Assembly: GCA_977017575.1 (NCBI GenBank)
Contig: CDRNVI010000078.1
Coordinates: 1-64,000 of the forward strand
Direction: 5' to 3'
Length of the DNA: 64,000 bases
From: Paramoeba atlantica
Taxonomy: Eukaryota > Protista > Discosea
Shown: piece after piece, positions 6,355 through 58,822 of the stretch
Layout: every line of letters starts with the position of its first letter
Numbering within the stretch: position 1 is the first letter of the stretch
Notes under the pieces: generated by a model
Seen by the model: only the letters and a program-made list of their open reading frames with translations
Databases searched by the model: none
Told to the model about the DNA's origin: nothing
Program-made: the position numbers and the translations under genes

Positions 6355-6915
6355 TAGTATAGAGGCGATGCCGCGTTTCATACACACTCCCCATTATTCA
6401 CGAAAAAAAGAGATGAGAAGCATGCCTTCATGAGAAGCACACCTCCCCAATCCCTGGTTCACCTTTGCTCCCGCCTGGATGATTTCCTTATGACCGCAAT
6501 AGAAGCAACTATCTGCCCCCTCGACGAGTCAGCGCGATCCCAAGTGCAACGTATGAAGAGGGGGGCCCGGCCTCAGATCCGCAGCCCAACGCGCCACAGC
6601 GGCTTACGTTACATCCGTCGCCTTTGCCGCTGAAAAAGATTCTTGTTTTTTTCTTTGTTGGGACCCCACCGACGCTGAAGGATTCGTCGAGTCCGTTCAA
6701 AACATCAACTTGAAGGCTGTAACTTCTCTACTCGATCCCCCAACTCTCCATGCGAGAAAGCTATCAACGCACCGTACTTCTATAGGAAGAGAAAACGCCC
6801 CTCGCCAGGAAATGATCCCCCCTCGGACGAGTCTCCCGGACAAGCTCTTCGAACGACGTTCCGCACTGCGAATACGCCCGCGGACGCTTATCGACGCACT
6901 CTCCACCCCACTCTA

Positions 6916-7550
6916 CAGGGGGGGCCACGAAAACTGACAAGGTCCGCATTTTAGCGTCCTGAGGCCGTTTGAGCTGATTTTTGTTGCAAACGAGAGATCT
7001 CGTTCTGAATATCGTGTCTACGCTATTTGGAGCCCGTTTCTGCTAATCAAAAAAAAAATACTTACAAAATATTGAAATTTTGGGCAAAATATTTTGCAAA
7101 AAGTATCGAAAAACGTAAAAAAGGCTATTTTTTCTTCTTTTTACCTTGCTATGGGCAAACGGAATAGACTAAACCGTCGCCAGCTATCACCAGAACAGTG
7201 TTCATATCCTGTGCGCATTGTCTGCGCACACGAAAGACACCGTGGGACATCTATTCCGGATACGGCACGTATGATGAACTGTTCAGAGAGCTCTGTCTCT
7301 CGGTACAAAGCGCGTTTTGATGAGTCAGGTGACGTGGCACGTGCACCCTACTCGCGCGATAACGGCGTTGATACGGAGGAGTTCCGAGCCATGCTCTGTG
7401 CTATTGTTGATGCTGAGCGAGGCACACAATTCGGGTGTCCGGGGTTTAAATGGGTACATAAGAGAGTGGATAAAGTACTTTATCCATGTAGTCTAAACAC
7501 CGTGAAACGGAGAGAAATGCGGACCTTGTCAGTTTTCGTGGCCCCCCCTG
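6916..7550 (+). mobile_element. Internally deleted Tc1-like element (635 bp)
   Basis: TIR CAGGGGGGGCCACGAAAACTGACAAGGTCCGCATTT at both ends with TA TSD. The truncated HTH ORF (ARMMNCSESSVSRYKARF...) is nearly identical to 22639-22920. Confidence 0.92.
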
Positions 7551-8308
7551 TATGGTTCGAAAGAATGTAGAGACATGTTATTCCCCAAAAGGAAAGATCC
7601 CGTGTCAACGAGAAATCAGCTGTGCAATAGCTGCCCACACCTTCTCCCAGGGGTATGAAGCAAAGGACGCACGCACCCAGGCAAAGTGGATTTCTAAGTG
7701 TGGATCACTAGAAATGGAAATCTTAAAAAAATTATCATTCTATGTGGCGAAAACTCTTAAAAAATTATCAACTTATTTTCATGTTTTAGACCGTACTTTC
7801 GTATTCATTTTTCAATGACTTCTCGATCACTAAAAAAGAAGCGCCCATTAGATGAATCGGGCTCTATAACTGTTGTTTACAAGCTTTGGAGGACGACCTT
7901 CTTCCAAGTGAACTGCGGTAGACAGAAGCTACACTAGGTCATTAATAATGATAATAACCTCAAAAAAGTATCATTCTTGAGGATAATAATTATCATTATT
8001 AACGGTATTAATGACAGGTGGAGTAGTCTTATCGGGAAAGCTATCGGAAAATTCCAGTATCTCTTGAAACTGCTTCATTGGGACACGTTTTAAGCACCTA
8101 AAATGCTTTTCCTAGAGAGACTCTACCGCTCCCGTTATTCGTAATTTTTATGAATAAAAAATAAAAAAAGTATCCGCCTCGTACGATTGAGTCAGTACTT
8201 TTACCTCATTGAATCATCACAACTTCCCCAACGAGGACGCGTCATCGCTTCCTACATTTCGCTTTAGAAAACAGCTTACTTTTTTATTTGTAATGGATTT
8301 TTCCTGTA

Positions 8309-11252: not shown

Positions 11253-11399
11253 AATGTAGAAGGAGACCAAGTTACCGGTGACACACTTTTTAACGTAATT
11301 AAAATGTATTGAGTCCAACCTTTTAGACTTTCAAAATGTACTTTTTTTAAATTAACGTAGCATAAATTAATATACCGTCCCCCCCCTATTTACTATTTA

Positions 11400-14300
11400 C
11401 ATACCCCTGCCGGGTAAATTGGTAATTACCCGGGTCTGCGACCCAGTTACCCGCACCGACCCGCACCGACCCGCATTGACAGGTCGTCTTAGAAAGCTAC
11501 ATATACATGTATACATCTGTTTGTTGTATCTTGTCATCGAGAAATAAACGTGCATCTTTGTTTCGGACCTTATGGTAAAGTGTTTTAAGGCTAAGTAAGA
11601 AGTCAATAATCATATTACTCTTGTGTTTGATCGCACTAACTAATCTCTGCTTACTTAAACTTATCTGTACTCATGGCTCGTCAACGACGATTAGAGCAGA
11701 CACCTAGCACGCCTGAATTATTTTCTTCATCTGATACTGAAGATGGTAATACCCGAGTCAAAAAAGATGAAGCATCGCGATACTATACGGCACAAAATGA
11801 CAGTAGAATCCTTATCTGGGCAATTCGTGCTCGTGCGCTGTCCTCCCGGATGCACCCACACACACACAGATATTCTCACCGATCCTTTGGGCCAAAAGCT
11901 TCATTTCATATGTACCAAGGAAGGATGCGCTTTTGAATCTCACTCTCGTTATAAAAATGTGTACCACAAGCATCGCCGCGAGTGCTCAAGATCTCTTGAA
12001 AATTCCCGATTGGCACAGGTGGAGAGTGCAAATAATCGGGGAGTAATTGTACAGCGCTTCGTAGGAAAAGTACTGCCATGCTTACAGACCCTAACGAATC
12101 TTTCTTCTAGTCGGTTTGTCTGGCTCGTGCATAAGTACGAGGATTTACGCCCTGATGTACCTGGAACAATGATAAAAAGAGCCCTTCCGGAATCAAATTT
12201 AAAGAAGTGGCACCACTATTGTGAAGTGCTGTCGCATGACATATGGGGAAAACTTTCTGCCGACGTAGACTCGCGTAAGCTCTATGGAATTGCCGTAGAC
12301 GCGGGCATTGACAAGGTAAAGGCTGAACATATCTTGTTGTCTGTGCTGTACGTTGGGTCAGAAGAGTATGTCTTACCACCGATATATTCTCCAAGGCATC
12401 GTGCCTTTGACGGAAAGACGGCAGCTGAGCAGTTGATTTCTACTCTTCTGGCGAACCTTGGTGAAGTTCGTTTGCTCAAAATGAGATACATTATTGCGGA
12501 CGACAGTGCTATAAATCACGTGGCCAGAAACCACTGTGAAGGCGAGCTCAAGCGAATATACGATCGGATTACACCCATTGGTGAGTCTGATACGGCTGCG
12601 CTGTTGCAAGGTATTTCTTCTCTAGTGCCGCGCATTACTCTCCTATCTTGCATCGGACATATGCTAAACAATGTTTGCCAAACAGCCTTGAAACCATACG
12701 AAGAGCTCCCGTGCTTCGCCTTTAAAAAAGCTTTCAGTCAAGCTTTTTACTCCGGAGGACGTGCAAGCGCCATGAAAGGTAAATATCGGGGCGTTGCCCC
12801 GGATTTGGCGCTCGCCCATTTCGATCGAAGTGTCCTAAAAGCAGAAGAAACGTTTCGACAATCATATCATGGACTTGGCGAAGATGTTCCTACCTTCTGT
12901 CGAAAAAAGCTACAGAACACCCTGCTTGAATGTGTGTCGAAATTAAAGGACGTTTCACCGTGCGAGTCGGAACCAATAATTGAGGCACTGTCAACAGATC
13001 AAAAAACGTGGAAAGAGAAGCATTGTCTCCTACTCTCTGAGGGAGTAAAGTTGCTGAAGTCCTTACAAGCGGCACGGGAAACTCGGGGAATTCAAACACC
13101 GAAGCTAGGAGGTGTAACACGATGGTGTACCGACAAATTCACCTGCATGCAGTTCTTGGCCGAGAACATGGCCACTGTCTCGGCATTAGTTCACAATGAA
13201 AGTGAGAAGCCCAAGGCTTCACCCTCCATACTGAAATGTAAACGTTTGCTGGATCAGTTTGGTTTCAGGGCGATCGGTGCCAGTTGCGAAGATTTTCTAC
13301 AGCAATGCAAGATCCTACACAGCGCCTTGCGTAAATTTTCGGACAATGCTGGTAAGCCAATGGCCACGCACGTTGGAACAACGCTGCAACTTTTATTCGA
13401 GCACAGCGAGAGTGAATCTGCACCGGAACTTCTGAAAGAATCTTTGATTTATCACAAAAAGCGCTTGCAGAAAAACCATAACATGCGATTTTGGAGCGAT
13501 ATTCTATGGTTTCGCCCAGCGTGGATCGTGAAATTCGCTCGTCCATGCGCATTACAACCCATTTCAGTGGGTCGAGCGAACAACATATTTGATAAGAATG
13601 CGGATGGAACATCTGCTGAAACTCCGATCTTTGAAATCTCGGCTGACGAGTGGTCGAAGTATGTCTCCTGCTCCGATTATGGTTGGGATCCGACGGTATT
13701 TCTGAACGAGTACGAGTGGTGGTGTGGTCCCGGAAGTGAGATGTTTCCCTCTGTTTGCGAAGCGGCTACGCACTACGTATGGACGCCTCCCTTAGTTAAC
13801 AGATGTGATTCGTGGCTGTCTATAATCGGGTACATGCACAGTTCCAGACAGGCTTCCCTGGCTCCTGATGTCGTTTCTCACCAGATCTTCGTACGTGGAA
13901 ATTGCGACAAATTGGGTTATATTCTTCCGAACGAAGGTGTTTCTCAGGATGGTAGCGATGTTGAAGTATCTGATGTCGAAGAAGATGAATTTGTTATGCA
14001 GTAATGATTAATGTATAATATTTTATTGTTAATATTAATGCTATGCATAGTATCACAGTATCATACACTGCCGTATAAATGTTTTCTATGTGGTGATTCT
14101 TTATAGTTTCACCTTAGTTTGCTAGGACTCGAGGGTAAACTCGACTGGCCAAAAAAAATAAAAAAAAATTGGTACCATTGCGGTGTTAGGGGGTAGGCTT
14201 CCGGTGGGCCTAGGGGGTTCACACCAAAAAAAATAATAAAATAGATGGGCGACACAAGCAAATCAGTAGAGGGAATTCTTCTTATGGAAGGAATTCCTCA

Positions 14301-14507
14301 TCGCTAAAGATACCGTTTCTGTACATAGAGCATTCTGTGCCAATCCTACGAATCAGCACACTTGAGAGGAAATCATTTTGTATTTAATGGCTAGTGCGCC
14401 GATGCGGGTCTGTGTGGGTCGGTGCGGGTAACTGGGTCACAGACCCGGGTAATTTACCCGCACAGACCCGCTAATGGGTAATTACCCATCGACCCGGCAG
14501 GGGTATG
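11400..14507 (+). mobile_element. hAT-like DNA transposon #1 (3108 bp), structurally complete, 6-bp TSD
   Basis: TIR CATACCCCTGCCGGGT / ACCCGGCAGGGGTATG; TATTTA at 11394-11399 and 14508-14513; subterminal GACCCGCACC and GGGTAATTACCC repeats. Confidence 0.93.
11743..14004 (+). CDS. hAT-like transposase (753 aa)
   Basis: N-terminal C/H zinc-finger-like segment, then GIAVD, IIADDSAIN, CxxH (SCIGHMLNN), GGVTRW, PPLVNRCDSWLS and a hAT-like C-terminal dimerisation segment (RQASL..IFVRGN). The true N-terminus may begin in another frame at 11673. Confidence 0.88.
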   Translation: MVIPESKKMKHRDTIRHKMTVESLSGQFVLVRCPPGCTHTHTDILTDPLGQKLHFICTKEGCAFESHSRYKNVYHKHRRECSRSLENSRLAQVESANNRGVIVQRFVGKVLPCLQTLTNLSSSRFVWLVHKYEDLRPDVPGTMIKRALPESNLKKWHHYCEVLSHDIWGKLSADVDSRKLYGIAVDAGIDKVKAEHILLSVLYVGSEEYVLPPIYSPRHRAFDGKTAAEQLISTLLANLGEVRLLKMRYIIADDSAINHVARNHCEGELKRIYDRITPIGESDTAALLQGISSLVPRITLLSCIGHMLNNVCQTALKPYEELPCFAFKKAFSQAFYSGGRASAMKGKYRGVAPDLALAHFDRSVLKAEETFRQSYHGLGEDVPTFCRKKLQNTLLECVSKLKDVSPCESEPIIEALSTDQKTWKEKHCLLLSEGVKLLKSLQAARETRGIQTPKLGGVTRWCTDKFTCMQFLAENMATVSALVHNESEKPKASPSILKCKRLLDQFGFRAIGASCEDFLQQCKILHSALRKFSDNAGKPMATHVGTTLQLLFEHSESESAPELLKESLIYHKKRLQKNHNMRFWSDILWFRPAWIVKFARPCALQPISVGRANNIFDKNADGTSAETPIFEISADEWSKYVSCSDYGWDPTVFLNEYEWWCGPGSEMFPSVCEAATHYVWTPPLVNRCDSWLSIIGYMHSSRQASLAPDVVSHQIFVRGNCDKLGYILPNEGVSQDGSDVEVSDVEEDEFVMQ

Positions 14508-14543
14508 TATTTAGTACTTCGCCCCCTACTTAGTGCTTAATTT

Positions 14544-15214: not shown

Positions 15215-17218
15215 ATGAAAAGCCACAAGCTGGTAGCCCAGAAAGTTGTGTGCTACAGGAATGTACACAAGTCACCCCAACACATGAAACTCACTGGCGC
15301 AAAGTGGTGGTGTACCAAAAATTGCAACGGAAGGTATGGTGCTTTGGGGCCGCTTGTTCCCGGCAGAGCTCATAGAACCACCAAACAAATGCTGAAATAT
15401 GTCATTCTCTATGTACGGGGCGGGCGTCATGCCGATGCAGAAGCGGAAGCGGAGGTGAGCAACCGAACCGTAGTATCTTTAAGACAGTGGATGGACTCTT
15501 TAATGCCCACTGCTCACTTACGTCGACGCATTCGGAATCGATCATCCATTACTAGAATGCAATGCGATAAAACTTTCTATTCCATCAGAAAGCGCCATCG
15601 TGGACGTCATGGGGCCAGACGTGTACAGTCAGCAAAAAAACCGTTCGAATGTTTCGGTTCTTTTTTTCTTTTGTATAGAGCTATTGATTAAATATCACCG
15701 TTGCGCTGGTAATGTGTGCTAGTAGTGTAGGCATGAGTGTCACCTAATAGTACCCGTGGATAGTTCACCTCAGCTCGTTCTACCAAAGAAATAAGAATGA
15801 ATATAAAAAAGTTTAGAATTCGAAAGGTTTTTTTGCTACCTATTATAGAGAAAATCTTGTCCCAAAAAATAGATGAAACGTAATCGCCCAAGAGAGATTA
15901 TGCCCGTAAAATTAGTATTTAGTATTCCCCCCACGAGCCTTCAGCACTGCCTTCGTACGGGCAGGCATACTGTCCACCTGGGCACGACATACTGAGGGTG
16001 GTATGTTCGCCCATTCCATTTTTACCCTCTCCCACAACTCTCGGACCCCGCTTGGTGGATCATCGTGCGCTGCAAGGCGCCGCTTGAGTTCCCCCCAAAC
16101 GTTTTCGATTGGATTTAAGTCAGGGACTGCGGGGGCCACCGCATGACTTCAAACCCGGTACCGCGGAGGTGCCGTTGCGCACAATGGTTTGTGTGCTTGG
16201 GGTCATTATCTTGTTGGAAGATGACCATTGGGGGGTCTAGACGCATAGTTTCAATGGAGGGGGCAAGATGTTGTGGGAGAGGGTAAAAATGGAGAGAGTT
16301 GTTGGGAGAGAGTTGTTGGGTTCGAGAGTTGTGGGAGAGGGTAAAAATGGAATGGGCGAACATACCACCCTCAGTATGTCGTGCCCAGGTGGACAGTATG
16401 CCTGCCCGTACGAAGGCAGTGCTGAAGGCTCGTGGGGGGAATACTAAATACTAATTTTACGTGCATAATCTCGCTTGGGCGATTACGTTTCATCTATTTT
16501 TTGGGACAAGATTTTCTCTATAATAGGTAGCAAAAAAACCTTTCGAATGCTAAACTTTTTTATATTCATTCTTATTTCTTTGGTAGAACGAACTGAGGTG
16601 AACTATCTACGGGTACTATTAGGTGACACTCATGCCTACACTACTAGCACACATTACCAGCGCAACGGTGATATTTAATCAATAGCTCTATACAAAAGAA
16701 AAAAAAACCGAAACATTCGAACGGTTATTTTGCTGACTGTACGTAGCGATGGAACGCAAGTAGCACAGACTATCGCTGTTACTACCAGATCTAACAAATT
16801 ATCCGAAATTTTCATGGAAATAGTCTCTGATCGCACTGCCGCAACGCTCGTTCCAAAAATTGATGAACTTGCTTCTGGGGGTCGCACTCGAATTTGGACT
16901 GATGGCGCCCGTCATAATCTAAAACTTCGGTCCAAGTACGAGTGACGAAGTGTAAATCATCGTCAGCAATGGGTCACCCCAGACGGGGTACATACAAACA
17001 CTGTCGAATGTGCTAACTCTATGGCTAAGAAGCGTTTGAAGCGTGAAGGAAATGTTTTGGGGAGCAAGCCAGGGAAAAGATCAGACCGAGTTCAAGCAAT
17101 TGCATCAGTTCAAGCAATTGCTGAAAAGTGTAACGGAAGTTTGAAGAGGAACGGCGGGGATGTCATGCTGAGAATCCTCGAGAACTTGCAGACTCATTGC
17201 ACTTGTATTCATCTTTAA
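15215..17218 (+). pseudogene. Merlin transposase pseudogene
   Basis: QCDKTF..RKRHRGR, then after the insert V.DRTAATL, IWTDG, VNH..WV.PDGVHTNTVE, all typical of DDE_Tnp_IS1595. In-frame TGA at 16943-16945. Confidence 0.88.
15626..16739 (-). mobile_element. Fold-back Tc1 derivative with ~430-bp inverted arms
   Basis: Ends CAGTCAGCAAAA / TTTTGCTGACTG with TA TSD. Arms ~15626-16052 and ~16322-16739 are inverted copies. Transposase C-terminus remnant QQDNDPKH..WPPQS / DLNPIENVW..GGNTKY. Confidence 0.9.
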
Positions 17219-17927
17219 GTTCACAGAGTTATGTAAGAAAGTCTTAAGATATTGAAGTAAGAAAGAAATCAATTTAAATTCATTGTACTGGAAGAGAGTA
17301 GCTTCGAAGTAGAGCCAGGATTCATCGGAAATATCAAAAAATATGAAAAATGCTAAATTTGCTTCAGTTTAACCGATTTTTGATAATATTACATTTCGTC
17401 TGATCTACCCATTTGAAATAAAAGTGGAAACAGTTTCGTTTTCTTGACACGCCCCTCTCTGTTGTATGTCGATTGGACCCCTTTCTGGCTGGTGCAGATC
17501 AAGCCAACCACTCCCTCGAGTTGGTTCACTGACTAAACAGATTGACAGAGCCATCAAAATCTTTTTGATCCCTCTTTCTCATTTGGTGTTCAGTGCCAAC
17601 TATGTTCGCCAACGATTTTTACCACCGGAACCTGTCATCGTGATTCCGTCACCTGAAGAGGTCAGCACTTCATTGGTTCAGGTTGATACCCTGCAGCGAG
17701 AGAAAGAAGCTGTACCCGCGAAAAAACGACGCATTGATTACCCCCCTCTAATAAGTAATTACTATCCCCCCCTATTTACATACCCTGGAGTAATCGATGT
17801 AGTAAATTACTACCGGTTACTACCGATTACTACATTGTTCAGTGTAATTATCTGCTAGTCCCAAAATTTAGTGTGAGTATCACCAATTCTATATCCCGCC
17901 TTGTGGTTGTACATACAGTTGTATATA

Positions 17928-18647
17928 CTGTCCCCCCTACTTAAGAGTCCGCGGGATACCCCCCCCTACTTAAGAGTCCTTTTTGACGGAGCCTCGGGCT
18001 GCCTGCGGCGCGAAGCGCCGCCAGATTTTTTTTTGATTGTTTTCTATTTTCTATGATTTTTTTATGTTGTCTGCCCATTGCGTTTAGTTGCGTTTTTAAT
18101 ATTTCAAAGCTATTTATACTTGATAGTACTCCGAGGAAGGAGTAGACATGGGACACAACCATCCTCCTCAACCCCCTTCAACTCTCTCGCGAACTGATCG
18201 AAGTTCTCCTCCCCTCCGATCACCCTTCTCACACGAGAACGGCAAATCTGCCGACCAACCCCCTTCATCTATCTCCCCATCTAACCAAGGTAACCTTCCG
18301 TTACCCCATTCCGGTAGCCAACCTCGTTCTCTTCTATCCCAAGTGTGCGCGGTATTGCATTACGAATATCATTATATTCTCCTGCATATCAAGGGTCACA
18401 TTTTGAATATTTATGACAGTTTTTTTGAACGTACCTCTGTAGCACGTGGGGTACAGACGCCGATCTTCATTAGACCAAAATAGAGAAAAAAAAATAGAGT
18501 AAAAAAATATAGACAAAAAAGGAACCGGCCATATTGAAATTTTATGAAAAAATGCTGACCCCCTACTTAAGAGTCCGAAAAATTGTGACCCCCCACTTAA
18601 GAGTCCAAATGCCCAAAATCGGCGGACTCTTAAGTAGGGGGGGGCAG
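17928..18647. mobile_element. MITE family A, copy 1 (720 bp)
   Basis: TIR CTGTCCCCCCTACTTAAGAGTCCGC, TA TSD, subterminal CCCCTACTTAAGAGTCC repeats; near-identical inverted copy at 58823-59544. Confidence 0.95.
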
Positions 18648-19941
18648 TATGTATTTCATGGTCGAAATGACAATAGTCTTGTAATTTCTACTCTCTCCAT
18701 TGTTCAGTCATGATGCGGCGGGGCACGGGGAAGCGCGTGCGGAAAAGTAGAGAATCTGAATCGGTGGCTGGAGGAGGCGAATCTGTTGATGTGGGTGGAG
18801 AACCTGAATCCCCAAGAGTCACCCGAGAGCAGCGTTCTAATCCTTCAGCGCGTGTGCGCAGGGAATTGTCGAGGGCACTGGGGCAGCGTTTGAATGAATC
18901 TCCAACACAGGCAACAGTAACTACTTCAGGATTGTTAACTCCGAATTCACGACAATTAACACGAGCACGTACGGGAAATGTGGATGATCCTTTGAGATAC
19001 GGAGAGCTATCCTTGTTTTTTAAGTACGAGCTTTGCAATTTCTCTAATTCTGAAAACGAAAATGATTCTACCAGCGCATGCCAGAAAGAACTTGAAACAC
19101 GCACCGACATTGGGACATACCTGCAAGACGCAGCAAACCAACGACGTCATGCAATCTGCCTGTACTGTGGCGCTGTTTTTCACAGCCGTTGCACACAGAC
19201 TTAGAGGGCTGAAACCTGGAGGACCCTGTCACTTATCAGGTGGGATCGGGTGGAATCGGTCGGGATCGGCGCTTGAGTAGCTTCTTAAGATACTGTATTT
19301 TTTACTACTTTGACCTTTTTTCTATCACTTTTTATTCTTTATTAGGCTCTTCGTTAAACGTAGTGGTTGTTTTCAACTTAGATGACACCACTGCTGCACG
19401 CTTCGCCTTGAAAACTACTGCCGCGTTTAACGAAGAGACTAAAAAAATGGAGAACGATACTAAAACAACAACGATCGTATCTACAACTTTGCTTGTTAAG
19501 TAGTACTTTACTTGTTAAGCAGAACAGTACTTGCTTTTAGAGGGGGGAAAGTCCTTCAACAAAGTACTTTCAGCAATTCAACCCTGAATGTATTGCATCA
19601 CGCAATTCCCCCCTATTTTTGGGACATTTAGACTAAATACTAAATTAGTATTTTTGTGTGATTCAATTTGTTCCCAAATAATTTCGATGGGGTTGAGATC
19701 AGGAGACTTAGGCATAGTCTAACTAGTATTTTAGTATATACTATAGTATATACTATGAGATACTACTTTTCGAAGGTGTCTATAATCTTATTAAGTGTCT
19801 ATAGAAATGTAGTTTTTCCCTGTATATGAATGGAAAGATTTGTCTTTATTGCGACATTTAGGACTGGTACACAAGTATTGCTCAGCCTTTTTGTTTACAC
19901 CTTATCACTTCCTTTAATCACCTTGTCACTCACTGTTTTAA

Positions 19942-21906
19942 ATGACGCAACGTTCAAAGAACTCGGAAAGCGCACCTTCAACCCCCACCCCTGAAAACAC
20001 AAGAAAGCGACCGTCAGCACGGGAGCTTCGCGAGAGAGTAGCCGCAATTACGTCACAGTTAGAGGAGACACCTTCCCAAGTAGCGTTAAGTGCGTCCCTC
20101 TCTCCCCTTGAAGAGGAGAATGCTCTCCAGAGAAAGAGAAAAAGCAACTGCGGGAACGATCCACTCGCTTGTGGAAGCCTCCGTCGACAGCAGCAATTAA
20201 CGTACGAGCGATGCGATCTCGGCGTTGAGTCCTCTGCAAAATTGTGCCTCGAGTGGGCTCGGAAAAACGTCTCAGGCATCCGGAATGATGCTATGGGCCA
20301 CTCACAGCATGTTCGATGTAAAGTATATGGGTGGGTGACCCATAGCAAGGGGGAGAATTTTTGTTATAAACATTTGAAAGAGTGCTGCTCGAAGGCGCAG
20401 CAGGGGATGGAAGACTCCAGTGAAGTTGCAAATCCCAAGTCGCTAGAGGAGTACATCTCCGAAGCTCTCCCATGTTTCGCAGCTCAGAGCAATCTTTCTA
20501 CCGAAGGATTCCTCGAGTGCGTAAAGAACTTATTTCAAGAATTTCCCCCCGACATACATCCTTCAGAAGCTGCATCGATCCTTCCTTCTCCTCGCGAATT
20601 TCATTCACTTGTTTCCATTCACTTGTTTCATAATATGGCCAAAGATGCAATGCAGCACTACGCAAATCTGCCAATTATGAAAGTAAGAACATACTTCTCC
20701 AGGATTTTCTATGCAGGGGACCGTGTGGGGGCAAAGAAGGGGAAGTATTTCGGAAAAGCTCTTGAAGATAAATTAAGCGCCTTTGACGAAGAGACTCAAA
20801 AAGCTGAATCGTACTTTAAATCTTTTTATCGTTCTGTGAACAGCGAAAAACTTGACAAGAGGGGTCGCAGGGACACCATAGCTCATCTCAAGGAAGCATT
20901 GCAAACTCTCTCGAAAGTATCTTTAAAGGCACGCGATGTGTTTGCCGAACTGAATCAAACTCTGGAAATAGAAGACCAATGTGAGATTCTAATTGCGAAA
21001 GGTGCTAGTGTGGTGAAATCCATTGCACATTCTCATGAAATTCGAGCCGTCACTTCTCCCAAATTTGGCGGGGTCACGCGATGGCTCGCGGATAAATTCG
21101 AAAGCATGAGGTTTTTGGCTGATCAGTTGCCTACTGTCGCATCCTTCATAAAAAGTGAACTGGAAACTCTGCGAGCCCCTCAATCTGTCCACCATTTGGC
21201 TGATTTGTTCGAAAACAACTCTTTGAACGACTTGATGCAGTCTACGAAGGATTTCCTGAAAGACTGTATGCCTTTACGCATCGCACAAGAAAAATTCTCT
21301 GACATGCAGGATCGTCCTATGGCAACTCTTGTTCATCCAACTTTGCGACAGCTTGTCGAGTCCGCTGAGAATGCATCCAGGCATTTCTTAGAGTCGATAC
21401 ATCGGCACGTCAATAGAGTATGCTCAAACCACGAGATGAAGGTATGGGCAGCTGTGATGTGGTTTTCGCCTGAGTGGATCGTCTTATCAGCTCGACCTCG
21501 CAAGAAGGAATCCCTTTCAGTGGAACGGGTAAATGATTTGTTGGGAACTGGCGACCCGATTTTCGACATTACTATTGAGGAATGGAGTACGTACATAAAC
21601 TGCGACGATTACCAGTGGACACCCGGCATGAGCGATCTTGAGTGGTGGCAAACACTTGGGTTGAAACATTTTCCGACAATTTTTGAAGCTGCATTGCATT
21701 ACCTATGGCTTCCTCCTCTAGTGACGGCATGTGACTCTATCCTTTCGGTACTTTCCTGGAAATATTGTGCCCGTCAAGCTCGCATTGGAACAGATGTTGT
21801 AGCGACACAAATGTTTCTTCGCGGAAACGAGAACTCGCTACCATATCGTGCAAGTCGTGCAAAAAAGGCGGCAAAGCGTGGATCTGACACGGAACACTCC
21901 ATATAA
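19942..21906 (+). CDS. hAT-like transposase with an in-frame internal deletion (654 aa)
   Basis: Collinear with the transposases of #1 and #3 (GGVTRW, PPLVTACDSILS, RQARI..MFLRGN) but lacks the segment carrying the first two aspartates and the CxxH cysteine. Confidence 0.85.
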   Translation: MTQRSKNSESAPSTPTPENTRKRPSARELRERVAAITSQLEETPSQVALSASLSPLEEENALQRKRKSNCGNDPLACGSLRRQQQLTYERCDLGVESSAKLCLEWARKNVSGIRNDAMGHSQHVRCKVYGWVTHSKGENFCYKHLKECCSKAQQGMEDSSEVANPKSLEEYISEALPCFAAQSNLSTEGFLECVKNLFQEFPPDIHPSEAASILPSPREFHSLVSIHLFHNMAKDAMQHYANLPIMKVRTYFSRIFYAGDRVGAKKGKYFGKALEDKLSAFDEETQKAESYFKSFYRSVNSEKLDKRGRRDTIAHLKEALQTLSKVSLKARDVFAELNQTLEIEDQCEILIAKGASVVKSIAHSHEIRAVTSPKFGGVTRWLADKFESMRFLADQLPTVASFIKSELETLRAPQSVHHLADLFENNSLNDLMQSTKDFLKDCMPLRIAQEKFSDMQDRPMATLVHPTLRQLVESAENASRHFLESIHRHVNRVCSNHEMKVWAAVMWFSPEWIVLSARPRKKESLSVERVNDLLGTGDPIFDITIEEWSTYINCDDYQWTPGMSDLEWWQTLGLKHFPTIFEAALHYLWLPPLVTACDSILSVLSWKYCARQARIGTDVVATQMFLRGNENSLPYRASRAKKAAKRGSDTEHSI

Positions 21907-22638
21907 AATAATATCGAACTACATGGCGCACAGAGTATCATACATATAGAGTATCGTAGCATACAGGGTATACATTGCGGTAAATATCAATTGAATTGCG
22001 GTAAATAGAATATATGGTAATATTGCGATAATATTCGTACGTCCAGAGCTCCGTTTTGTGGTATTTCTTCTCCGTATCTGAGATATTTTTCTCTGGTTTT
22101 TTTCTCAGTGTTCAACAAGCGAAATACTTTTTTCGTCCACAGCAACGGTTTATTGTACTATTATGCACTATGTATTGACGTCGGAACTGGGTTCTGTGGT
22201 TTAACTCAGTGTCGTGTAAGTCCTTGAAGTATTCCTTCAGGTATCTTTATCAATTCAGAATAACATATAAAGATATATTTATGCATTGATGAAAATAGCC
22301 ACGTTTAGTATTTTTTATTACACTACAATATATTAATTTTATTCGTATATTCGTGCTACACGCTCTTGATCTGTTTCTTTTCTTACATCATATACCAATG
22401 AAAAATATGTGAGGAAGCGTTTATGCGCGGAATGCGAGATCTGAACTCCTTTCACCCCTCAACTCACTTTTTCACGCACTCGACTCAACTTTCGCTCAGG
22501 ATAAGCATCCTTTCACCTCTCTGTGCGCATCTGCGCTGTGGTAAACCAAATCAATTCCTGATTTTTAAGGAAGTTTATTGGTTGATTTGTTAAGTAACTG
22601 TTGGAGAATGAAGCATTCAGAATATTCTCCTGCTTCCT

Positions 22639-25600
22639 TTGTCTACAAGTATTGAAGACACGGCACGAATGATGAACTGTTCTGAGAGCTCTGTCTATCG
22701 GTACAAGGCACGTTTTGATGAGTCAGGTGACGTGGCACGTGCGAGCTACTCGCGCGATAATGCCGTTGATACGGAGGAATTCCGTGCTATGCTTTGTACC
22801 CTTGTTGATGATGAGAAAGACACCCCATTCGGGTGTCCGGGGTTTAAATGGGTACACAAGAGAGTGGACAAGACACTTTATCCTTGTAGTCTGAACACCG
22901 TAAAACGGAGTTTGAAAAGGATGGGATACGTCATTAAGACTATGTCACACAAACCTTTCTTAACTGCTGAGCACAAGGCTGCCCGATTACAACTTGCTGA
23001 TTACTTCGATGGATGGAGTCCAGATCAGCTGTCCCGTGTGGTATGGTGTGACGAGAAGATTTTCCGATGTGGTTCACATGGGAAAAAAATCACATATCTT
23101 GCAAAAATCAATGACCCCCCCAAGGAAACACCAGTAGAAATGGATAGGTGGTACGGGGGGAAGGGAGTGCATGTATTCATGGCAACCAGTCTGCGTTGGG
23201 AAGTACCCGATGCGTGTTTCCACGAGTTTTCCCAGAATGAAACCGTAACAAACGAAGTTTTTCTGAGAACAATGAAGAAGCGAAATGGGTTTTTTAACTG
23301 GATGCATCGGCGGCCGGGGGCTGCTGTTGTCCTTGACAATGCGCCAGGGCACGGGGCAGCCCGGAGAATAGGTAAGCTGGAAGGAATTAAAATTATTGAC
23401 TGGCCTTCGAAATCTCCTGATCTCAATTTGATTGAGAATTTGTGGAGTACCGTCACCCCCCCCCCCCACTTGTCCCGACGAAAAGGCCAAAAAAGCGGAA
23501 AAGGAGGATAAGTCGCGTGGTAGGACAAGTCACGTAGCATCAAGAGGAATTGTATGGCACATTTTTGTATGCATCCGTGTACATGGAAAAACTCTTTTTC
23601 GAACTTATTAGGTCGGCTTCAGTACCATCAGCGAGATGGCAGTGCCAGGGAAGACCACGAGGAGGTCCCGACCTTACTTCCCCATTTCCGTTTTGTGCCC
23701 AACTTTCAGAGGAAGTTGTTTTTTTTTACAGAAACGGTAACTTTATCGTTTGAACAGCTTTCCGAATATAACGTGAACGATATATATAACGTGAGACCAC
23801 GTACCAATAGAGTAAATACATTGTATATGAATACAAATGGTGTTTACAAGGGAAAAACAATATCAACTGAATTAAAGCATGTAAAAAAACCCAAGTAAAT
23901 AAAAAGTGCGCGAATATAAATTTTATGAAATATAGGAAAACGTATAACGCTAAAACAGAAAATGCACTTTAAATTTATTCTGCTTTATTATAATACAGCT
24001 ATCATTTTTAATAAAACAGTTTCTGATCTTTAATGAAGTATACAACGGTCATCATTTTCCTCCCCCTTGACTTCAATCGCGCACATATGATGGAAGGTTC
24101 GTTTACAACCATACTCGCTACATTCACGTCTGACGAGATTCACAAGTGTACAATAGCAACACTCTTGTACAACTGCCACGTCGCTTGATTTTGGAAATGG
24201 TGCATCAAAAAAACTATTATTCTCTACCCTTAACTGTGACAACTCACTCGAACAGAACATCGATATGCCTTTCCTTCAAGTACAGAAGCAGTTCCTTAGT
24301 GCGATGTGCCGCGTAAAGATCTAGGACAAACAAAGTCTTGTAAGGTGGGAACTTTGATCGGTCGCAAAACTCAAATTTGGCCCACTGTAAAAATGTTACA
24401 CCAGTCGTCCAACCAGATTTCGACGTAGTGCTGGTACATTTATATTTCACGCTGGCTCGCTTGGTTTCTTGTGCAATGGGTCCAACCTCTGATTGCGCGC
24501 TCCAAATCAGGTGAGGTGGGTTCATTAGGTGCGACCAGGTGTCATCATAATTTTTCGAAGAACGACATCACATCCAACAAGTTGTAATGTTACGCTCTTT
24601 TCCAGTTGTACATATCTTGACGCGCTTGGTTCCACGAAATTCATACGTTAGATTTGCCACAGGCTCCCAGGCAACAGGTGTTTCGTCTCCATGAACAATT
24701 ACTTTGTAACCGCCGCAGTCGGCATTCATGAGAGAAAGTATATCTTTCCAGTTTCGGACTTTTTCTTCTGCATCCACAGGAAGTAACTGGGTGCAACCGT
24801 TCACCCGGCGAACAGAAATGTTTGCCCACTTACAAAAGCGCAACCAGAATGCCTGTTGGCCTCGGTCAGTAAGGTTCCGGAAGTGATCAGAAACTTCGTT
24901 GAAGTATTTGACCATCATGCTCTTGGTCACTGAAACTAGCGACTCTCTCAACACCTGCACAGTTTCCAATCCACCCTGATACACCTCACGATTTCGGAGT
25001 GGAGGGTGATATTGGAATTTGTTTCCGTACCCGAGATGCACAAGTTGCTGCCATTCTTTTTTCTTTGAATAAATTTTGCGTACAGTGCTACAGTCAACCT
25101 TGTATTTTTGTGCCACTTTCGCTTGACTTTTTCCGTTGTCAAGCGCAGCACAAATATTGCGCTTTTGCTGGATTGTGATGTCAACGCGTATTTTTCGCTC
25201 AGATGCACTCTGTGATACGGAAACCTGTTGAGCATTTATTACACTTCCAGACGTGTCTCCCACATAGGGTATCACCGCTGTGTTTTCAGTTTTCGAAGTG
25301 ATGGGTACTAGTACTTGACTAGCGTTGAATGGTTCACAGTTTCGCTTCTTTCTAGACATCATGATTCAAATAGTTTTTAAAGAGATAATATCTGTAGACT
25401 GAGTGTCGTACTTTGTAGAGATAGTCGTAACTGGTTTCTATTAAATACAACTGTATCGGCAACTAAAAAATACGAAAAATATAATTTTTCAAAAATGACC
25501 AAGGGCAGGGGACTACCACGTGACATATCCGCCCTCAAATTCTCAAGAGCGGATATGTCACGTGGTAGGACAAGTGAGGGGGGGGGGACGGTATGATGGA

Positions 25601-26016
25601 TAAGTACATCGACACCCATCTTCGTCCGAAAAATCGAACGGAATTGCAAGCTGCTATTCCTAAGGCGAAGGACTACTTGTTGGCAGAGTGTCACGAGGCG
25701 TATGTGAACACGTTACAGAGTCTTCCCACACGCCTCGCTACTCTACGTGAGCGTGGAGGTGGGAATACTGGATATTAAGACTTAGTTTCTACCGCGAAAG
25801 GCCAAAAATTACTATTTTGCGCTCTTTTTTCAATTTGCAAAATCTCAAAAATTTCAGTTTTTCGACCCATGGGAAAGGCTTGCTTTCATCAGTTTTTGTA
25901 TTCTAAATAGCGTAGACACGATATTCAGAACGAGATCTCTCGTTTGCACAAAAATTAGCTCAAACGGCCTCACGAGGCTAAAATGCGAAGCTAGTCAGTT
26001 TTCGTGGCCCCCTCTG
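22639..26016 (+). mobile_element. Tc1-like element with its transposase split by a pogo insertion; left end missing
   Basis: Coding 22639-23449 plus 25592-25778 (WCDEK, LDNAPGH, WPSKSPDLNLIENLWS|MMDKY..GGNTGY). Right TIR GTCAGTTTTCGTGGCCCCCTCTG+TA matches the element at 6916. Confidence 0.9.
23450..25591 (-). mobile_element. pogo/Tigger-like DNA transposon (2142 bp) with a degraded transposase
   Basis: TIR CCGTC(A)CCCCCCCCC(T)CACTTGTCC, TA TSD. ORFs 24568-25362 (HTH, GDETP), 24244-24525 (LFVLDLYAAH) and 24030-24260 (Cys/His-rich). Confidence 0.92.
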
Positions 26017-26556
26017 TATACTAGCCGAATACTAGTGTTTTAGTATATACTAGTATACTGGTTAGACTATGCTTAGGGGGCCAAGCTAGCATGGTGACAC
26101 TATTTTCATCAAAATGGTGAGGGGTCAAAATCATGAGGGGTCCACTCCGACAGCTCGCGGCACAGCTCTATTCATTTCTGCTTGTGGGCAGCCGTAAGAG
26201 CTGGATGACGGGGGACAGCGCGCAAAATGATGCCTTCACGCTTTAAAGTGCGCGTGATAGAGCGCCGGGAACAATAAAACCCTTCGGACTGAAGGGTTGA
26301 CACGAGGTTCGACCATGAACGGAATTCCATAAGGCAAATCTCGCGTACCTTCACCAATGAGGGTTATAGCTCGGCTGATTATCCACGTCTCCTGTCTCCT
26401 CGTATCGCTGAATCCAACGCTTCGCAGTGTTCTCGTGACAACCTGCTTCGCGTGCGTCAGAGGTTTTACCAATTGGACGAACTTCTTCAACCCCTCAAAA
26501 GGCGTTAGTCGGATAGGAAAATGTTCTGAGCAGGGGTCAAAGTCACAGAGGACGTA

Positions 26557-27635
26557 CTGTGACCCGCCCCTTTAATACGGACAGATTTTTGGACATTGTC
26601 CGTATTAAAGGGGGGGGGTACTAAAGATAAGAAAATGACCCTGTTTTTAAGCTAAAAAATGCGACAAAAAAAGTTTCGCGCCGCTTTGCGGCGCCTGTTT
26701 TTTTTGATGAAATTGGTGAAGGGGGGTGATCTGTAGGGGAAATAAATTTTACGAGCACAACCCAGACTAAAGTGGACGAGGGAGATACTAAACCACAACC
26801 CGGTTTAACATTCCGGGGAGAATGTTAAGTAGCTACAGGAACGTTAACTTTTTTTTTGAGTTTGGTAATCGTATTCTTCAAAACAATGATGGCATAAAAG
26901 TTAACATACCTGTAGCAAGATATCTGTAACAAGATAACATACCGGGGGGTATGTTATCCTGTAACACCATTTACAGGATAATGAGACGTTTCCTTCAGGA
27001 AGTAAAAAGTTCGATTATTTTGAGTCGCCTTTTTCCGATATACCGTAGACCCACCAGTAATAGACCCCCCAGTAACAAGGATTTGGCTCGGGAGGGTGGC
27101 TCAAGGGGGGAGGGGGATTTGGGCGGGGTGAGGGGGGTTGCGCGGGAGCGAGTGTTCTTCTTTTACCCTAAATGGGTTGCCCGGGCTGCTCCGATTTTTC
27201 ATGCGCTGATGAGTGGTCCAATACTTTGCTTTATATGCAACGGAAGAGAGCATCATATTCCGGATAAAAATCATGCTCTTATGTATGAGGCCGTTACTTG
27301 TTCGAAAGGTCATGAGCCACTGGTACGTACTCTTAAGGAAGATCATTGGTTATGCTTCGATATAAAGTGCCGCGGTAAAACTTATTTTTGGGAACCTCTT
27401 CTGACGGCCGCACATGGGCGCACCGCAAACCAGGTTTTTAAAGTCTTATACGGTATCACTTCTGTAGCCGGCTACTGATCTCAACGAAGAGTGGACTTGG
27501 GGCAAAAGCGATCACTCGGCTGACAAACATCCCTTTGAGTCGTGCTCTCGAACAATGAAAATCGAAAAAATAGAAATCGAAAATTTTCCTTCCAAAAAAC
27601 TTCAAAAAATTCCGTATTAAAGGGGGGGGTCACAG
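26557..27635. mobile_element. Family B element, copy 2 (1079 bp)
   Basis: TIR CTGTGACCCGCCCCTTTAATACGG / CCGTATTAAAGGGGGGGGTCACAG, TA TSD; contains a family C fragment. Confidence 0.9.
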
Positions 27636-30600
27636 TACTTTAATTCAAAGAACGCTCAGCTAAAGCAAAAGAATCAGACGACAAAGGATACACGCAGCAG
27701 AGATTTGCACTCAAGTCCAAAAGAGCGAAAGAGGAGAAACAAAAATGTATAGGGGCTTTCTATTTAATAGTAAATGTTTGTTTAGCTTCTCCTACCTTCA
27801 TATGAACATTGTTTTTGATTTTTAACAATTGAATGAGTTTCTGTAAAAAAATGGTCGCTATTTCTTTCGCCGAATTTCTTGAACTCGCGTTTTCACCAAG
27901 TCTTTTCTTCCACGTAAATTCAACCAGGACCGGTGGGATCGGCCGGGATCGTAAATCCCTAGTTTCAGCCCTCTTATTATGTGCACAAGAACGAACGCTG
28001 TAAAGTGCTTCATAACCGAGAACAGCAGGATACCCAGTCGAATGTTGTCAAGTGCGTTGATTTCATAAATGAAGGCCTCTCATGCTTGGCCGCTAAGAGC
28101 AGCATGTCAACGGAAGCCTTCCTTTCGTTCGTACGATCATATGAAGAAATACGTCCAAACAGTCCACCAGCAGAAATACTGTCTCATTTGCCTTGCCCGA
28201 AGACTTTTCATGTGAAGGAAAAAATTGTTGCTAGTAAACTTTGGGAAACGATTCGTGCAACCGTGAAGCAGCACTCATTTTTTGGACTAGCTGTAGACGG
28301 GGGAATAGATAATGTCAAACATCAACACATAGTTGTAAGCGTAATATATCGGAGAAAGTTCGTTTGTGTTGCCACTTGTATATCATAAGCGAAAAAAGGC
28401 CTTTAGTGGAGCCGAAATGTCCGCACACCTTATGACTATGTTAAGAAGAGGTTTGGGAGACGATGTCTTAAAGCTGCGGTACTTGATGGTGGACGGATGC
28501 GCAGTTGATCATGTTGCACGTGCCGCCACAGAAGAAGCACTTAAACAATTTTATGAGCGGTACGAAGAAGTAGGTACTCTTGACAAAGAGCATTTGTGTA
28601 ACGGGGTGCGTTCTGTTGTTCCATGCGTTCGTGAGCTTTCTTGCTTCGGTCACCTAGTAAATTTAGTTGCTCGTGAAGCGCTTGCTCACTATCGTCAACG
28701 TCCTTTTATGCAACTCCGCGACTCTTTCGCGCGCCTGTTTTATTCGGGAGGAAAACCTAGCGCCAAGAAAGGAAAGTACTTGGGGAAAGCTCTCGAGGAC
28801 CTTGTATGCCCGTACGACACGACTACGAGCGAGTGCGTAGAATTTTTTTCGCAGTGGTGTTCCTTGCCTGAAGAAACTCCTCTCACTGAAGCTATTTTAC
28901 AGAACCATTTCAGTAAACTATTGAAAGCACTAGAAGGACTCCAAAGAGTATGTGGGCTAGATCTAAGTGATATCAAATGAGTACTTTCGTCAGACACCAG
29001 CTCAGAAAGTAAGCAGGAAGCATTGAAGCAACAAGGACCAAAAATTGTTGATGCGTTGCAGAAGGCTCGGCAAGTTTCCACTACCCGCTCCAAAGCTTGG
29101 AGGCGCTACGCGATGGTGCACAGATTATTTTGACAGTGTTCAGTACCTAGCTACTCAGATGCCAGCGATTATATCGTACGTGCAATCTGAAATTGAATCT
29201 GGACGGCCATCCAAATCTGTTGAACGGTGCGCAAGCATCGCGGTTGCGAACAGCATGGAAGATATGATGAAGGAGGCGAATATGTTCTTACAGGAATTGA
29301 AGCCTGTTCACGACATACTGAAGGAACTTTCTGACGTACGGGACAGTCCTATGGCGCTGATTCCCTACCGCGCTACTAAACTTTTACTCAGAGAGGCTGA
29401 TCGTGAAGGTTGCCCCGCAGAGTTAGGTGCGGCTCTTCGAAAACACCTAGACGGACTGCAGCAAAAGTCGTTCATGTTCTTCTGGGAGGGAGTGATGAGT
29501 TTTTCACCAATGTACGTACTCATGGTTCGAGAGCATAGGGAAGAGGCCGGCACGATCATTGGAGTTGACGGGGCTAACGATCTCTTCAAAAGTGGGACAC
29601 CAGTGTTTGGAATTATTGCCGAGGTTTGGTCTGAATACTCGTCCGGCAAAGGTTTTGACCGCGATCCAGCCGAGCATAAGACGGCCTGGAGTTGGTGGCA
29701 GTCAAGAGGGCGGGAATTGTTTCCCACTATTTATGAAGCTGCTCGTCACTACCTCTTTGTTGTCCCTGTTGTCACCGAATGCGACTCTCTGCTTTCCATC
29801 ATGGGATGGAAGTATGATGCACGGCAGGCTTTTCTAGAATCTGACGTTATTGCGACACAGATGTTCCTCCGCGGTAATTTGGAGAATATTGGATTTTCGT
29901 GAAGCTGGTTTGACAAGAAAGCGACGTTTATAGACTTTTGCTATACCTGTAGTACATTTTTTTAAGTTTACTTAGGGTTTTTTTTCCGTGAGTTCTTGGT
30001 TATGATCATACGCTCGTGGCGCAGAGATACGTCTCTCTGTGTGACGGCCGATACCATCGGCGCATGACCCGCATACGACGGGTGTCACACAGAGAGTGGA
30101 GTGCGAGGTAGGAGACGAGACGCCCATCGGTCATGCTACAGCACGTATAGCCATGGTTCATGCTGCAACACGGTCAAGCCGTGGGTTCATGCTGTCAGAT
30201 GGTCTATCGTGGATCATGATGCATCATGGGGAGGTCCGTTACCGCCGCACTCGCTACAGCATGTAGGGAGAGAGGGGTGCAAGTTCGCATCCCCTATACA
30301 CGCATACAACGTGTCCTCCCGCTGTAGCACGCCCAGTGGTCCTCAAGGGAGGCCACCATGGCGCATAGCTCCCGGGAGAAGAAAGCACGAGAAGGAGAGA
30401 GCCGGGGAGGGAAGAAAGCTCACTCGAAGAGAGCGAGCCGGGGAGGGGTGAAGAGTGCGAAGTGCGTCCCCTACTTCCGCGACAAAGAGGGACAGTTTCA
30501 GCTAGCCGTCAGCCGGAAACGGGCATTTAAAAGTAAGAATACGCCCGTTTCCGGGAAAAGAAAGGAAGGGCTAGCAAAATGTACCAACAAGGTACAGAAA

Positions 30601-32195
30601 CTGGTCTTGTTTTTCCCTTTGTAAACATACAAGTTTGAAGTTTCTTCCGTTCTATATTCTATAATATTATATTCGTTCATGGAAAATTTTTATAATTGTT
30701 GTTTGAATAGTAGTATTTCGTGTGATGTCATGAAAGAAGATAAAGCATTTTTGGTCTAATTTTTAATGTTAAGATATACATCTCAAATGGAGGGTTTAAA
30801 TGAGGTGTGTCATTCAATCGAAATGCAACGTAATAACTCCATGCAAAAGACAGTTGTAGACAATGTAGAGTTGCAATCTATTTGCTTCATACACAGTGAT
30901 AATCATAATAACGTCCTCTGGTGTGATCATCATACACACATGTATCTTTAGAAGTTTTTGCCAAATCTCAACAACCTACATAGTTTATGACACCGCGAGG
31001 AGTGTCTTTATGTCGCATCGGTTCTTTTGTCTGCCTCAACCATGTCCGAAACTGCTGCTCCACACTCTCAAAAGTCGCATGAAGTAATCGACGTAGTAAT
31101 CAGTATTCGGTGTAGTAATCAGTAACCAAAATGTAGTAATTTACTACCGATTAAACATCATGTAGTAATTTACTACATGATTAATCCAGGGTATGTATTT
31201 AATATGACTCCGATTTTGGGCAAAATGCCCTTTTAAAGGGGGGTACATGGAAAATAATGTGAAAGAAAAAAAATCGGCGGATTCGATTTTTTTTATCTTC
31301 CCTGAAATCTATTTTGGCCTTCCAGACAAAATGGCCGTATTAAAGGGGGGGTCGTACGTAGCCCTATTAAATAGGGAGGGGATAGTATAAATACAAATTA
31401 TAAACGTTTTGGATTTATCTTTATAATTATAAATATATTTATAATTATAAATGGCTTTTAGGTGCTGTAAACCCAATTCCGAGAAAAATGGACCCCTTTT
31501 AGACCAAAAAAGCTGTTCTGCGTATCCGGATTTTCGTATTTTTCACTGCCTTGCCGCTCCGAGCCGCTCAGATGACGCTTCACCCCTCTTGCTTTGCTTT
31601 AAATTTCGAGCAGACTCATTTTTGTTTATAAATAAGAAGTATTTATAAATCTTGAGAACAGGGTAATTTATAATTAGTTGTTAGAGGGGGGTATACTATC
31701 CTGGAGAATATCCTGGAGAATATTTACTCCTGGACGATATCGACGAGATATAATTTATGATATCTCGATATTCTGGATTGGATTCCCCGATATTCTAGTT
31801 CGATATCGACGAGTGTCCTGAAGTTCGATATCAGACGTTGCAAAAACAAAAAATATCAACGGGAGCACAGCCAAAAACGCGAATACGTCTAGGTTGCGGT
31901 CGCGCTAATCAACACCACCCTCCTCTGAAAAATCGCGAGCTCTATGAAGAAGGTACTTCGATGCTCCACATACTAAGGGAGGCAATGGTCGGAGTCACAA
32001 AGCCTATGATGTTCAAGTATTTTGCAGAAGTTTCCCAGCATTTTAGTACCCTCACTGAGAAAGGACAGAATAAGTTTGGGCTGCGATTATGTAAGTATGC
32101 AAACATTATTCGTCGCCGAGTCAATGGCTGTACACAAATGGTTCCTGTGGCTCCGTGTTACAAAGCTACATGCATCAGTACTGAAAACCAATGGG

Positions 32196-39860: not shown

Positions 39861-40184
39861 CTCATGTTGGTATGACAAGGTTCTCGCATTAGATTGCTGC
39901 GCATTGCTGTTCCATTATTATAAAAATAAATTGTTCGCTTTAAGAAACATTTGCACTTCTAGTTTGTATTTCTATTCTGAACTCAAAGCTATGGTTCTCC
40001 TGACTCAACACGCGAATCATACCATATTCGACATGCTGTGAATGACACATGCGGATCTTGAATTGAACTGCGAATCAACTGTGAAATTTCTCTTGCTCTT
40101 GTATATAGAAGTATAAAAAGTAAAATACGTTTAAAAAGCCCCAAAAAACAAGCTAGCGAAATATTTTTGAACGGTGTAACTATG

Positions 40185-43573: not shown

Positions 43574-45029
43574 GCCCGGTCCATTTCTGAGCCGCATTCC
43601 GAGTCGCATTTTTGGTAAAAGGGTTCTAAAAACTGCTAACCATACTCGATGTTTTTTTCATTTTTGGAGCATTACAGAGATTGATTGATGAATAATAGCT
43701 CTTCTTTTAAAATTTTGAAAAACCCGTTTTAATGCTCGTTTTATGCCCATTTTGGGCTTGCGGAATTAACCTTAGTAAGCGAGTTAGACACTCACCGTAT
43801 CTCCCTCAATAAGTTATTTTAAGTAATGGGATCCCAACTTTGTTTCCCAAGAAAAAAGACGAGCTTTCTTTGATTGAAATTCATAGTCAAGGTCCCACTT
43901 TGTCACAAAACATTTTTCAAAATGTATGAAGTACGGACTTTCGTACTTAGTACGGATAGTACGGTACTTAGTACGTACTATCCGTACTAAGTAGATGTAT
44001 GATAAGTAGTCTGTAGCCAAAAATTGTCCAATTTGCTGAGCTCCCGCTATTCGGGGCGAAGTGGGTGTTACACCAGTTCATCCCGAACGCCCCACGTCTC
44101 CAATAGGAGATGCCAAAGACCTAGGTATTGCATTATCGCGGTGCGAGCGTAGTTGGCAGACGGTGGGCCTTCCAACCTGCAGGTTGGGGGTTGGATTCCC
44201 GCTATCGACAAAACTCGCAACCTGGCGGCCTCACTACAAAGGGAAAGCGATCAGGAGTGCCTTCAAGTCCCACACCCAACCCCGCTCCCCTGGAGGACCG
44301 ACCCGGAACCGCCGAGCTGAACCAGGCTCCAGCGCAGCCGCTAAATTGCAAGCTGCTTACGCAAAGGAGGCTTGAGACACAGCCTACACGATGCAACGGG
44401 GTGGACGCCCGTCCTGGTAGCTACGGTTGGGTAGCCATTCTCGGGCCGCAAGGCGTCGAGTGCCGTCTGGGAAGGGGGTAGCAAGACGATGAAGGTCGGT
44501 GACCTGAGACTCTACCTTAACGGTTGGCGCTGCAGAGCCCTCCGTGTCTTCTTCTTCTTCTTCTATTGCATTATCGCCTGCTTGCTGGCATAGTTCGGAA
44601 ATGTCGAGTCTCAGCTTCAATGGTTTGGACTCCTCAGCTTCGACGGACCAACTCTTCTAGGGTGTTATACACCCTAGTGTTGTACCCTCGAGCGGACTTG
44701 GTTCCTCAGCTTCAAAGGACCAAATCTCAGCTTCAACTAGCTCTGAAGCTCCGAATTATGACCCTAGTCCGGTTATCATGGGCTAGCTGCAAGCCGCAGA
44801 TGAGCGGTACCCGAAGGGGGCGGCGAAGGGGGCGGCGAGGAGGGGAGGGTGAAGAGGGGTGGGGACGGTGGAGATCTCACATGATCTCGTCTTGGGCCTC
44901 ACCCGCAGCCCCTCACTTGTTGAAGGGAAATGGAGGTGCAGCAAGAAATGCAACGGAAGGTACGACGCATTAGGGCCCATGGTGCCCGGCCGGGCGTGTA
45001 GGAACGCGAAGCAAATAATTAAGTACCTA

Positions 45030-58709: not shown

Positions 58710-58822
58710 CAGACGCGGATTTAGTAGCGTAACATTGAGTAGAAGTCACAACATCACTAAGAATAAAAGAGGGGTTTTACACGTCGCGCCGTGTATGAAT
58801 AAAAATTTGTGTACCCAAAATA

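Follow-up and report, generated by a model that had tools for sequence, protein, structure and literature searches.

The third catalytic Glu is treated as one of five residues essential to hAT transposases and is used to call hAT elements active (PMC6027215). What, then, is to be made of hAT-like transposases that carry Asp at this position? The 64,000-nucleotide stretch of DNA analyzed here (hereafter the window) poses this question with three transposons: are they decayed copies, a branch of a catalogued hAT group, or a lineage of their own?

Termini and Target-Site Duplications

Each of the three elements starts with CATA and ends with TATG, with terminal inverted repeats (TIRs) matching at 15-16 of 16 bases. 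They, the insertions nested in them and the relevant flanking features are arranged in the window as follows.

11394..11399 (no strand): left target-site duplication (TSD) of element 1, TATTTA; right copy at 14508-14513
11400..14507, plus strand: element 1, full-length DDD-hAT copy, 3108 bp, with a 16-bp perfect TIR beginning CATACCCC
11673..11755, plus strand: native start ATG (11673) of element 1 and a 2-nt deletion between 11754 and 11755, which leaves the start out of frame with the main ORF
11743..14004, plus strand: element 1 transposase ORF, 753 aa
14508..14513 (no strand): right TSD of element 1, TATTTA
17779..31195, plus strand: element 2, a dead copy of another family; TSD TATTTA at 17773-17778 and 31196-31201
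17928..18647 (no strand): TA-flanked non-coding element (pogo/Tc1-like MITE) nested in element 2
19204..27973 (no strand): PIF/Harbinger-like element with GAGGGCTGAAAC TIRs and a 3-bp TSD, TTA; it splits the ORF of element 2 and has element 3 inside it
19713..26071, plus strand: element 3, a Ds-like internal-deletion copy; TSD CTTAGG at 19707-19712 and 26072-26077
31357..31387, minus strand: opposite TIR of the element that hosts element 2; its single TATTTA is the empty-site control for the 6-bp TSD

The initial annotation had proposed these element coordinates, the CATA..TATG termini and exact 6-bp TSDs, and all were borne out when ends and duplications were re-read. Among the TSD lengths tried for the three elements (4 to 12), none fits except 6; the chance of a match between a random pair of 6-mers in the window is 3e-4. 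A CATA/TATG scan of the window found a TIR match of at least 13/14 together with a TSD only in elements 1, 2, and 3. An internal control is provided by element 2, whose insertion point is the left TIR of a small TA-flanked element. When element 2 is excised in silico and one TATTTA is left, the resulting site needs no gaps in alignment with related element ends at 58818-58860 and 18610-18649. Its match to the opposite TIR of the host element is close, with one 1-nt gap outside the site.

Further Copies in the Assembly

Homologs of the transposases led to contigs of the ENA assembly ERZ24900291. A protein from a 75-kb contig of this assembly (P0131) matches element 1 from the ninth residue on, including the substitution G254D described below, so the window itself probably comes from ERZ24900291, which would then not be an independent genome. 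Four further two-ended copies, and a solo end in the window, were read.

L001 9591-12540: two-ended copy, TSD ATTCTA
L002 9885-11942: two-ended copy, TSD TATTTA/GATTTA (5/6)
L008 9029-11457: two-ended copy, TSD TCATTT
L012 7752-10893: two-ended copy, TSD TATTAT
Window 43808..44001, minus strand: solo left end of a fourth family (195 bp, 92%), whose intact-looking copy is L012:7752-10893

All four fit 6 bp, and a 6-bp TSD thereby fits seven of seven readable insertions (one at 5/6), all from what is probably one assembly. An 8-bp duplication matches at most 5/8 in any copy, and the matching flanks of a 2-bp TA duplication are absent at element 3 and at the L001, L008, and L012 copies, which have 6 bp instead. 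The seven target sites are AT-rich, TATTTA occurring three times. Uninterrupted copies measure 2.7-3.1 kb, within the 2.5-5 kb expected of hAT elements, and have the short TIRs and subterminal repeats also expected of them. Copies that are 94-97% identical occupy different sites with different TSDs, which indicates fairly recent movement.

More distant loci from other samples (L004, L006, L011, and L013) have CATAC or CATGG ends spaced 2.7-3.1 kb apart, and no matching TSD was found in their flanks in these short-read assemblies. A single element, at 99.4%, is present in both L006 and L013, and its four flanks all differ, as expected if short-read assemblers collapsed a multi-copy element. The TSD length given here is that of copies in one assembly, outside hosts giving no readable TSD.

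Several other features adjoin these copies. A C-run (CCCCCCTA-type) lies within ~20 bp of four of the seven insertions (window 11374-11399, 17760-17778, and 26072-26085; L001 9570-9590) and resembles the ends of abundant TA-flanked elements; a target bias is possible. A 267-aa ORF at window 42770-43573 adjoins the solo family end and could be cargo or part of another element. A CATACCCTGG end like that of element 2 occurs at window 41031-41060, and after it comes a palindromic repeat that recurs at 19349-19446; the window yielded no partner for this end. Long foldback inverted repeats occupy window 15623-16742 (388 nt, 98%) and L002 3718-5892 and 13555-15572; the apparent 6-bp TSDs at the two L002 loci are the palindromic centers of these repeats, which are not of the present family, and were rejected.

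State of the Individual Copies

Element 1 carries subterminal GGGTAA/ACCCG repeats in inverted arms at 11424-11476 and 14402-14454. Its 753-aa ORF encodes a zinc-finger-like motif (C57/C62/H77/C81), D186 (12298), D253 (12499), C303/H306 (12649/12658), R460-W461 (13123), D689 (13807-13809), and the hAT dimerization region. This copy had been taken to be intact, and the ORF does exist, but it has suffered the 2-nt 5′ deletion and G254D (12502). The latter places Asp next to the second catalytic Asp where 42 of 44 homologs have Gly, and I257V alters a further conserved column. The ATG at 11673 corresponds to the start codon of sister copies (L008, P0128), whose proteins open with MARQRR; in element 1 it leads into a peptide of only 87 aa in the wrong frame, and the start of the 753-aa ORF lies downstream. 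The N-terminus lost in this way was probably disordered, so element 1 could still be active, and the deletion might itself be an assembly error. One sister copy of element 1 carries a further element of ~700 bp, with CCCCTGGG ends, in its 5′ arm (L008 9127-9832).

The transposase of element 2 survives in pieces at 18710-19203, 27977-28349 (D1 at 28296), 28345-29076 (D2 at 28492, CxxH at 28642-28653, stop at 28978), and 29045-29902 (third Asp at 29783); its motifs are kept in an ORF split by an 8.8-kb insert, two frameshifts, and one stop. In element 3 an in-frame internal deletion, marked at its junction by a 14-bp tandem duplication (20602-20629), has removed D1, D2, and the Cys of CxxH from the ORF (19942-21906); the third Asp lies at 21733, and downstream of the deletion the sequence is 98% identical to P0159. 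The motif order D, D, CxxH, ascribed earlier to all three transposases, therefore holds for element 1 and for the broken ORF of element 2, but not for element 3, where it fell to the deletion. Nested in element 3 are remnants of Tc1-like (DDE_3) and pogo-like (CENP-B_N) transposases (window 22639-23511 and 24568-25362), and Tc1-like ends related to this Tc1-like insertion occur at 6914-7552.

The L012 copy has a 776-aa ORF (P0158) with all motifs, TIRs, and an exact TSD. To judge from its sequence it is intact-looking and the best candidate for an active element, and the three damaged window copies would need transposase in trans, for example from this copy.

A hAT Fold with Hermes as the Closest Structure

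On its own, the element 1 protein matched nothing in Pfam or the PDB. A phmmer search of 1.84 billion representative proteins gave 117 hits, mostly fragments, from which a family profile was made. In the PDB this profile matched only Hermes (E 7e-8), aligning CD-S-x-x-S without gaps on Hermes SERTFS so that D689 falls on E572, with the CxxH motifs also aligned. The AlphaFold model of element 1 (pLDDT 87.8) matches Hermes at Z 23.7 (395 residues, 3.5 Å; next match 11.5) and that of P0158 (pLDDT 79.0) at Z 22.2 (next match 10.9), both over ~390 residues, in a comparison that gives ranges rather than a residue-level superposition. The hAT fold first suggested from sequence motifs is thus supported by both profile and predicted structures, with Hermes at Z 22-24 and the next match at ~11. 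Named structure-atlas matches are all hAT families.

In the element 1 model D186 is on the first strand and D253 just past the fourth, and the last RNase H helix carries D689 in its first turn; these are the usual positions of an RNase H catalytic triad. Homologs conserve the first Asp in 54/54, the second in 59/60, the Cys and His of CxxH in 56/57 and 57/57, and the Trp in 54/55. The C-terminal dimerization region (PF05699) was detected in 11 of 15 members, with a best E of 5e-6 and several above the gathering score.

Asp at the Third Catalytic Position

Reading all three ORFs confirmed the motif C-D-S-x-L-S that had been reported for them. Over all fetched proteins (n = 64) the third-residue column holds Asp in 63, Gly in one, and Glu in none; after clustering, Asp accounts for 25/25 at 60% identity and 18/18 at 50%. 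Both GAT and GAC codons are in use, and the preceding residue is Cys in 62/65. Across the homolog alignment the last RNase H helix has no other conserved acid; just one further column is partly acidic, and it varies and belongs to the next helix.

Comparison of element 1 with the L001 family gives pN 0.17 and pS 0.85 (saturated). The family tree, a midpoint-drawn quick search with no outgroup or Glu-type hAT references and with element 2 entered with X at its breaks, is deep: many of its branches come close to or exceed one change per column, and its members are drawn from several samples. Named members are transcripts of Papus ankaliazontas, one of them full-length at 795 aa, and the others come from unrelated metagenomes. 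One member, P0168 (MCG3773110.1), lies on a 2.7-kb contig labelled as a Nitrosomonadaceae MAG and is a probable case of mis-binned eukaryotic DNA, not a bacterial member. Pattern scans of IMG/VR or JGI contigs found no relatives.

An Asp that is invariant across so deep a family excludes decay as its source, and purifying selection and the spread over several samples likewise agree with the earlier view that the change from Glu to Asp is not decay. The DDD variant of hAT is real and shared by the whole lineage; its ends are CAT, and its TSDs in this host measure 6 bp. A precedent for a lineage-wide Glu/Asp difference at the third position within one superfamily exists in mariner (DD34D) and Tc1 (DD34E), although these have an unrelated architecture, a TA target, and no hairpin.

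Relation to Known Groups

The family shares with Hermes of Musca domestica (PDB 2BW3, 4D1Q, 6DWW, and 8EDG) a fold of ~395 residues, the order D-D-CxxH-RW, a helical insertion domain, the C-terminal dimerization region, and short TIRs with subterminal repeats. It differs in having Asp in place of the canonical Glu (Hermes E572, Ac E719), TSDs of 6 rather than 8 bp, an extra helical stretch of ~100 residues before RW, and termini (CATAC, CATAG, and CATGG) that depart from the hAT consensus [T/C]A[A/G]NG (PMC6027215). The last helix differs too: the position of Hermes R573 is Ser, Gln, or Gly, and that of R586 is mostly Gln, also His, Arg being kept in the most divergent members. Hermes K585, R586, and R588 contact the TIR (PMC4763223), which makes a link between the remodeled helix and the CAT ends plausible. 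Taken as a whole, these are likely to be cut-and-paste DNA transposons whose lineage lies deep within the hAT superfamily and is probably undescribed.

Might they instead be the protist arm of some hAT group already catalogued, hAT6 being the most plausible, or be listed in Repbase under a plain hAT name? The group hAT6 reportedly goes back to Kapitonov and Jurka in 2007. Its defining trait, in a hAT transposon, is the 6-bp TSD, and its published members are three animal families (hAT6-1_NV, hAT6-1_SP, and hAT6-2_SP) sister to Blackjack (PMC12730594); the present family occurs in a probably kinetoplastid-type host and in Papus. The same text accepts groups with TSDs other than 8 bp and has TSD length changing several times within hAT (hAT5, hAT6, and hAT7), which weakens the 6-bp likeness; hAT5 and hAT7 differ from the present family in their TSDs of 5 and 7 bp and their animal and rust-fungal clades, and DDD is not mentioned for them there (PMC12730594). 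Atlas feature neighbors do include DUF4371/FAM200-type clusters at 0.90-0.91, but the DUF4371, DUF659, and hAT RNase-H Pfam models gave no match at E<=1 in 15 members, and no Glu-type hAT was among the 117 phmmer hits. A catalogued group is thus unlikely, and the sequences lean toward a separate lineage.

A good deal harder to sustain is the view that the family forms a superfamily of its own, with hAT as its sister in the CxxH group (hAT, P, MULE, and Kolobok) and with the same fold. Triad, TSD length, and terminal consensus all differ together, and identity to Hermes is 10-13%; against this, the dimerization region, RW, and CxxH are kept, and the match to Hermes over ~395 residues stands far above those to P transposase (Z 8.6, rmsd 7.5, with the P0158 model) and ISCth4 (Z 10-11). 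P-element Pfam models gave no match in the 15 members. The dimerization region and the Hermes match may also weigh against Dada, Kolobok, and IS3EU; IS3EU has a 6-bp TSD but TAYGG ends. Finally, the Asp might be non-catalytic, with proteins that are dead or use another third acid and elements that are moved by a canonical enzyme. The damage in each of the window copies speaks for this, as does the inactivation of mariner-type enzymes by D/E swaps at their third position, but the reading is scarcely credible given an invariant Asp in a very deep family under purifying selection, own TIRs around an own gene in each family, near-identical copies at different sites, and a sole other partly acidic column that is variable and on the next helix.

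For the preferred reading, a DDD lineage within hAT, a mechanism can be outlined. The N-terminal zinc finger would bind the subterminal repeats, and D186, D253, and D689 would hold two metals. CxxH and RW suggest that cleavage at the ends leaves the flanking DNA with hairpins, as it does for Hermes and Kat1 (PMC4763223), and the two 3′ ends may then attack AT-rich target DNA 6 bp apart. The change from Glu to Asp would be ancestral to the lineage and accompanied by the remodeled last helix.

Genomic Setting and Significance

The closest solved structure to the uS2 protein of the window is that of Euglena, the long window ORFs seem to lack introns and, in its second half, mostly share one strand, and the nearest named transposase homologs are those of Papus; a kinetoplastid-type euglenozoan origin of the window sequence is likely. 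Two large paralogous ORFs with TBC domains occupy window 35430-39878 and 49330-54504. Harbinger-type (DDE_Tnp_4) and Merlin-type (IS1595) transposase genes occur at L001 21235-22000, L002 8074-9252, and L009 7851-8411, and this assembly, in contrast to published kinetoplastids, is rich in DNA transposon superfamilies.

In the literature searched, the only DNA transposons of kinetoplastids are inactive Merlin elements, and trypanosomatids have none (PMC8101967; PMC12278014). Merlin, of another superfamily, is reported as inactive and without conserved TIRs or TSDs in Bodo saltans and Perkinsela (PMC8101967). No description of a DDD hAT or a kinetoplastid hAT was found in that literature, a provisional result, Repbase and the main hAT reviews lying outside the search. 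A fuller proposal is put forward tentatively, at somewhat less than even chances: an ancient, undescribed DDD lineage that belongs to none of the named hAT groups, is widespread among euglenozoan-type protists and is still mobile here, and whose shortened third acid and remodeled last helix are tied mechanistically to CAT ends and the 6-bp stagger. No natural hairpin-type hAT transposase with DDD, and no kinetoplastid hAT, would then have been reported before it.

A diversified, recently mobile hAT family bears on when kinetoplastids lost their DNA transposons. Since Glu is used to call hAT activity, members of a DDD lineage would be taken for dead elements or overlooked; element 1 has no Pfam match of any kind. 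A natural DDD hAT also offers a direct test of the tolerance for Asp versus Glu in a hairpin-forming RNase H active site, and of what sets the target stagger at 6 or 8 bp.
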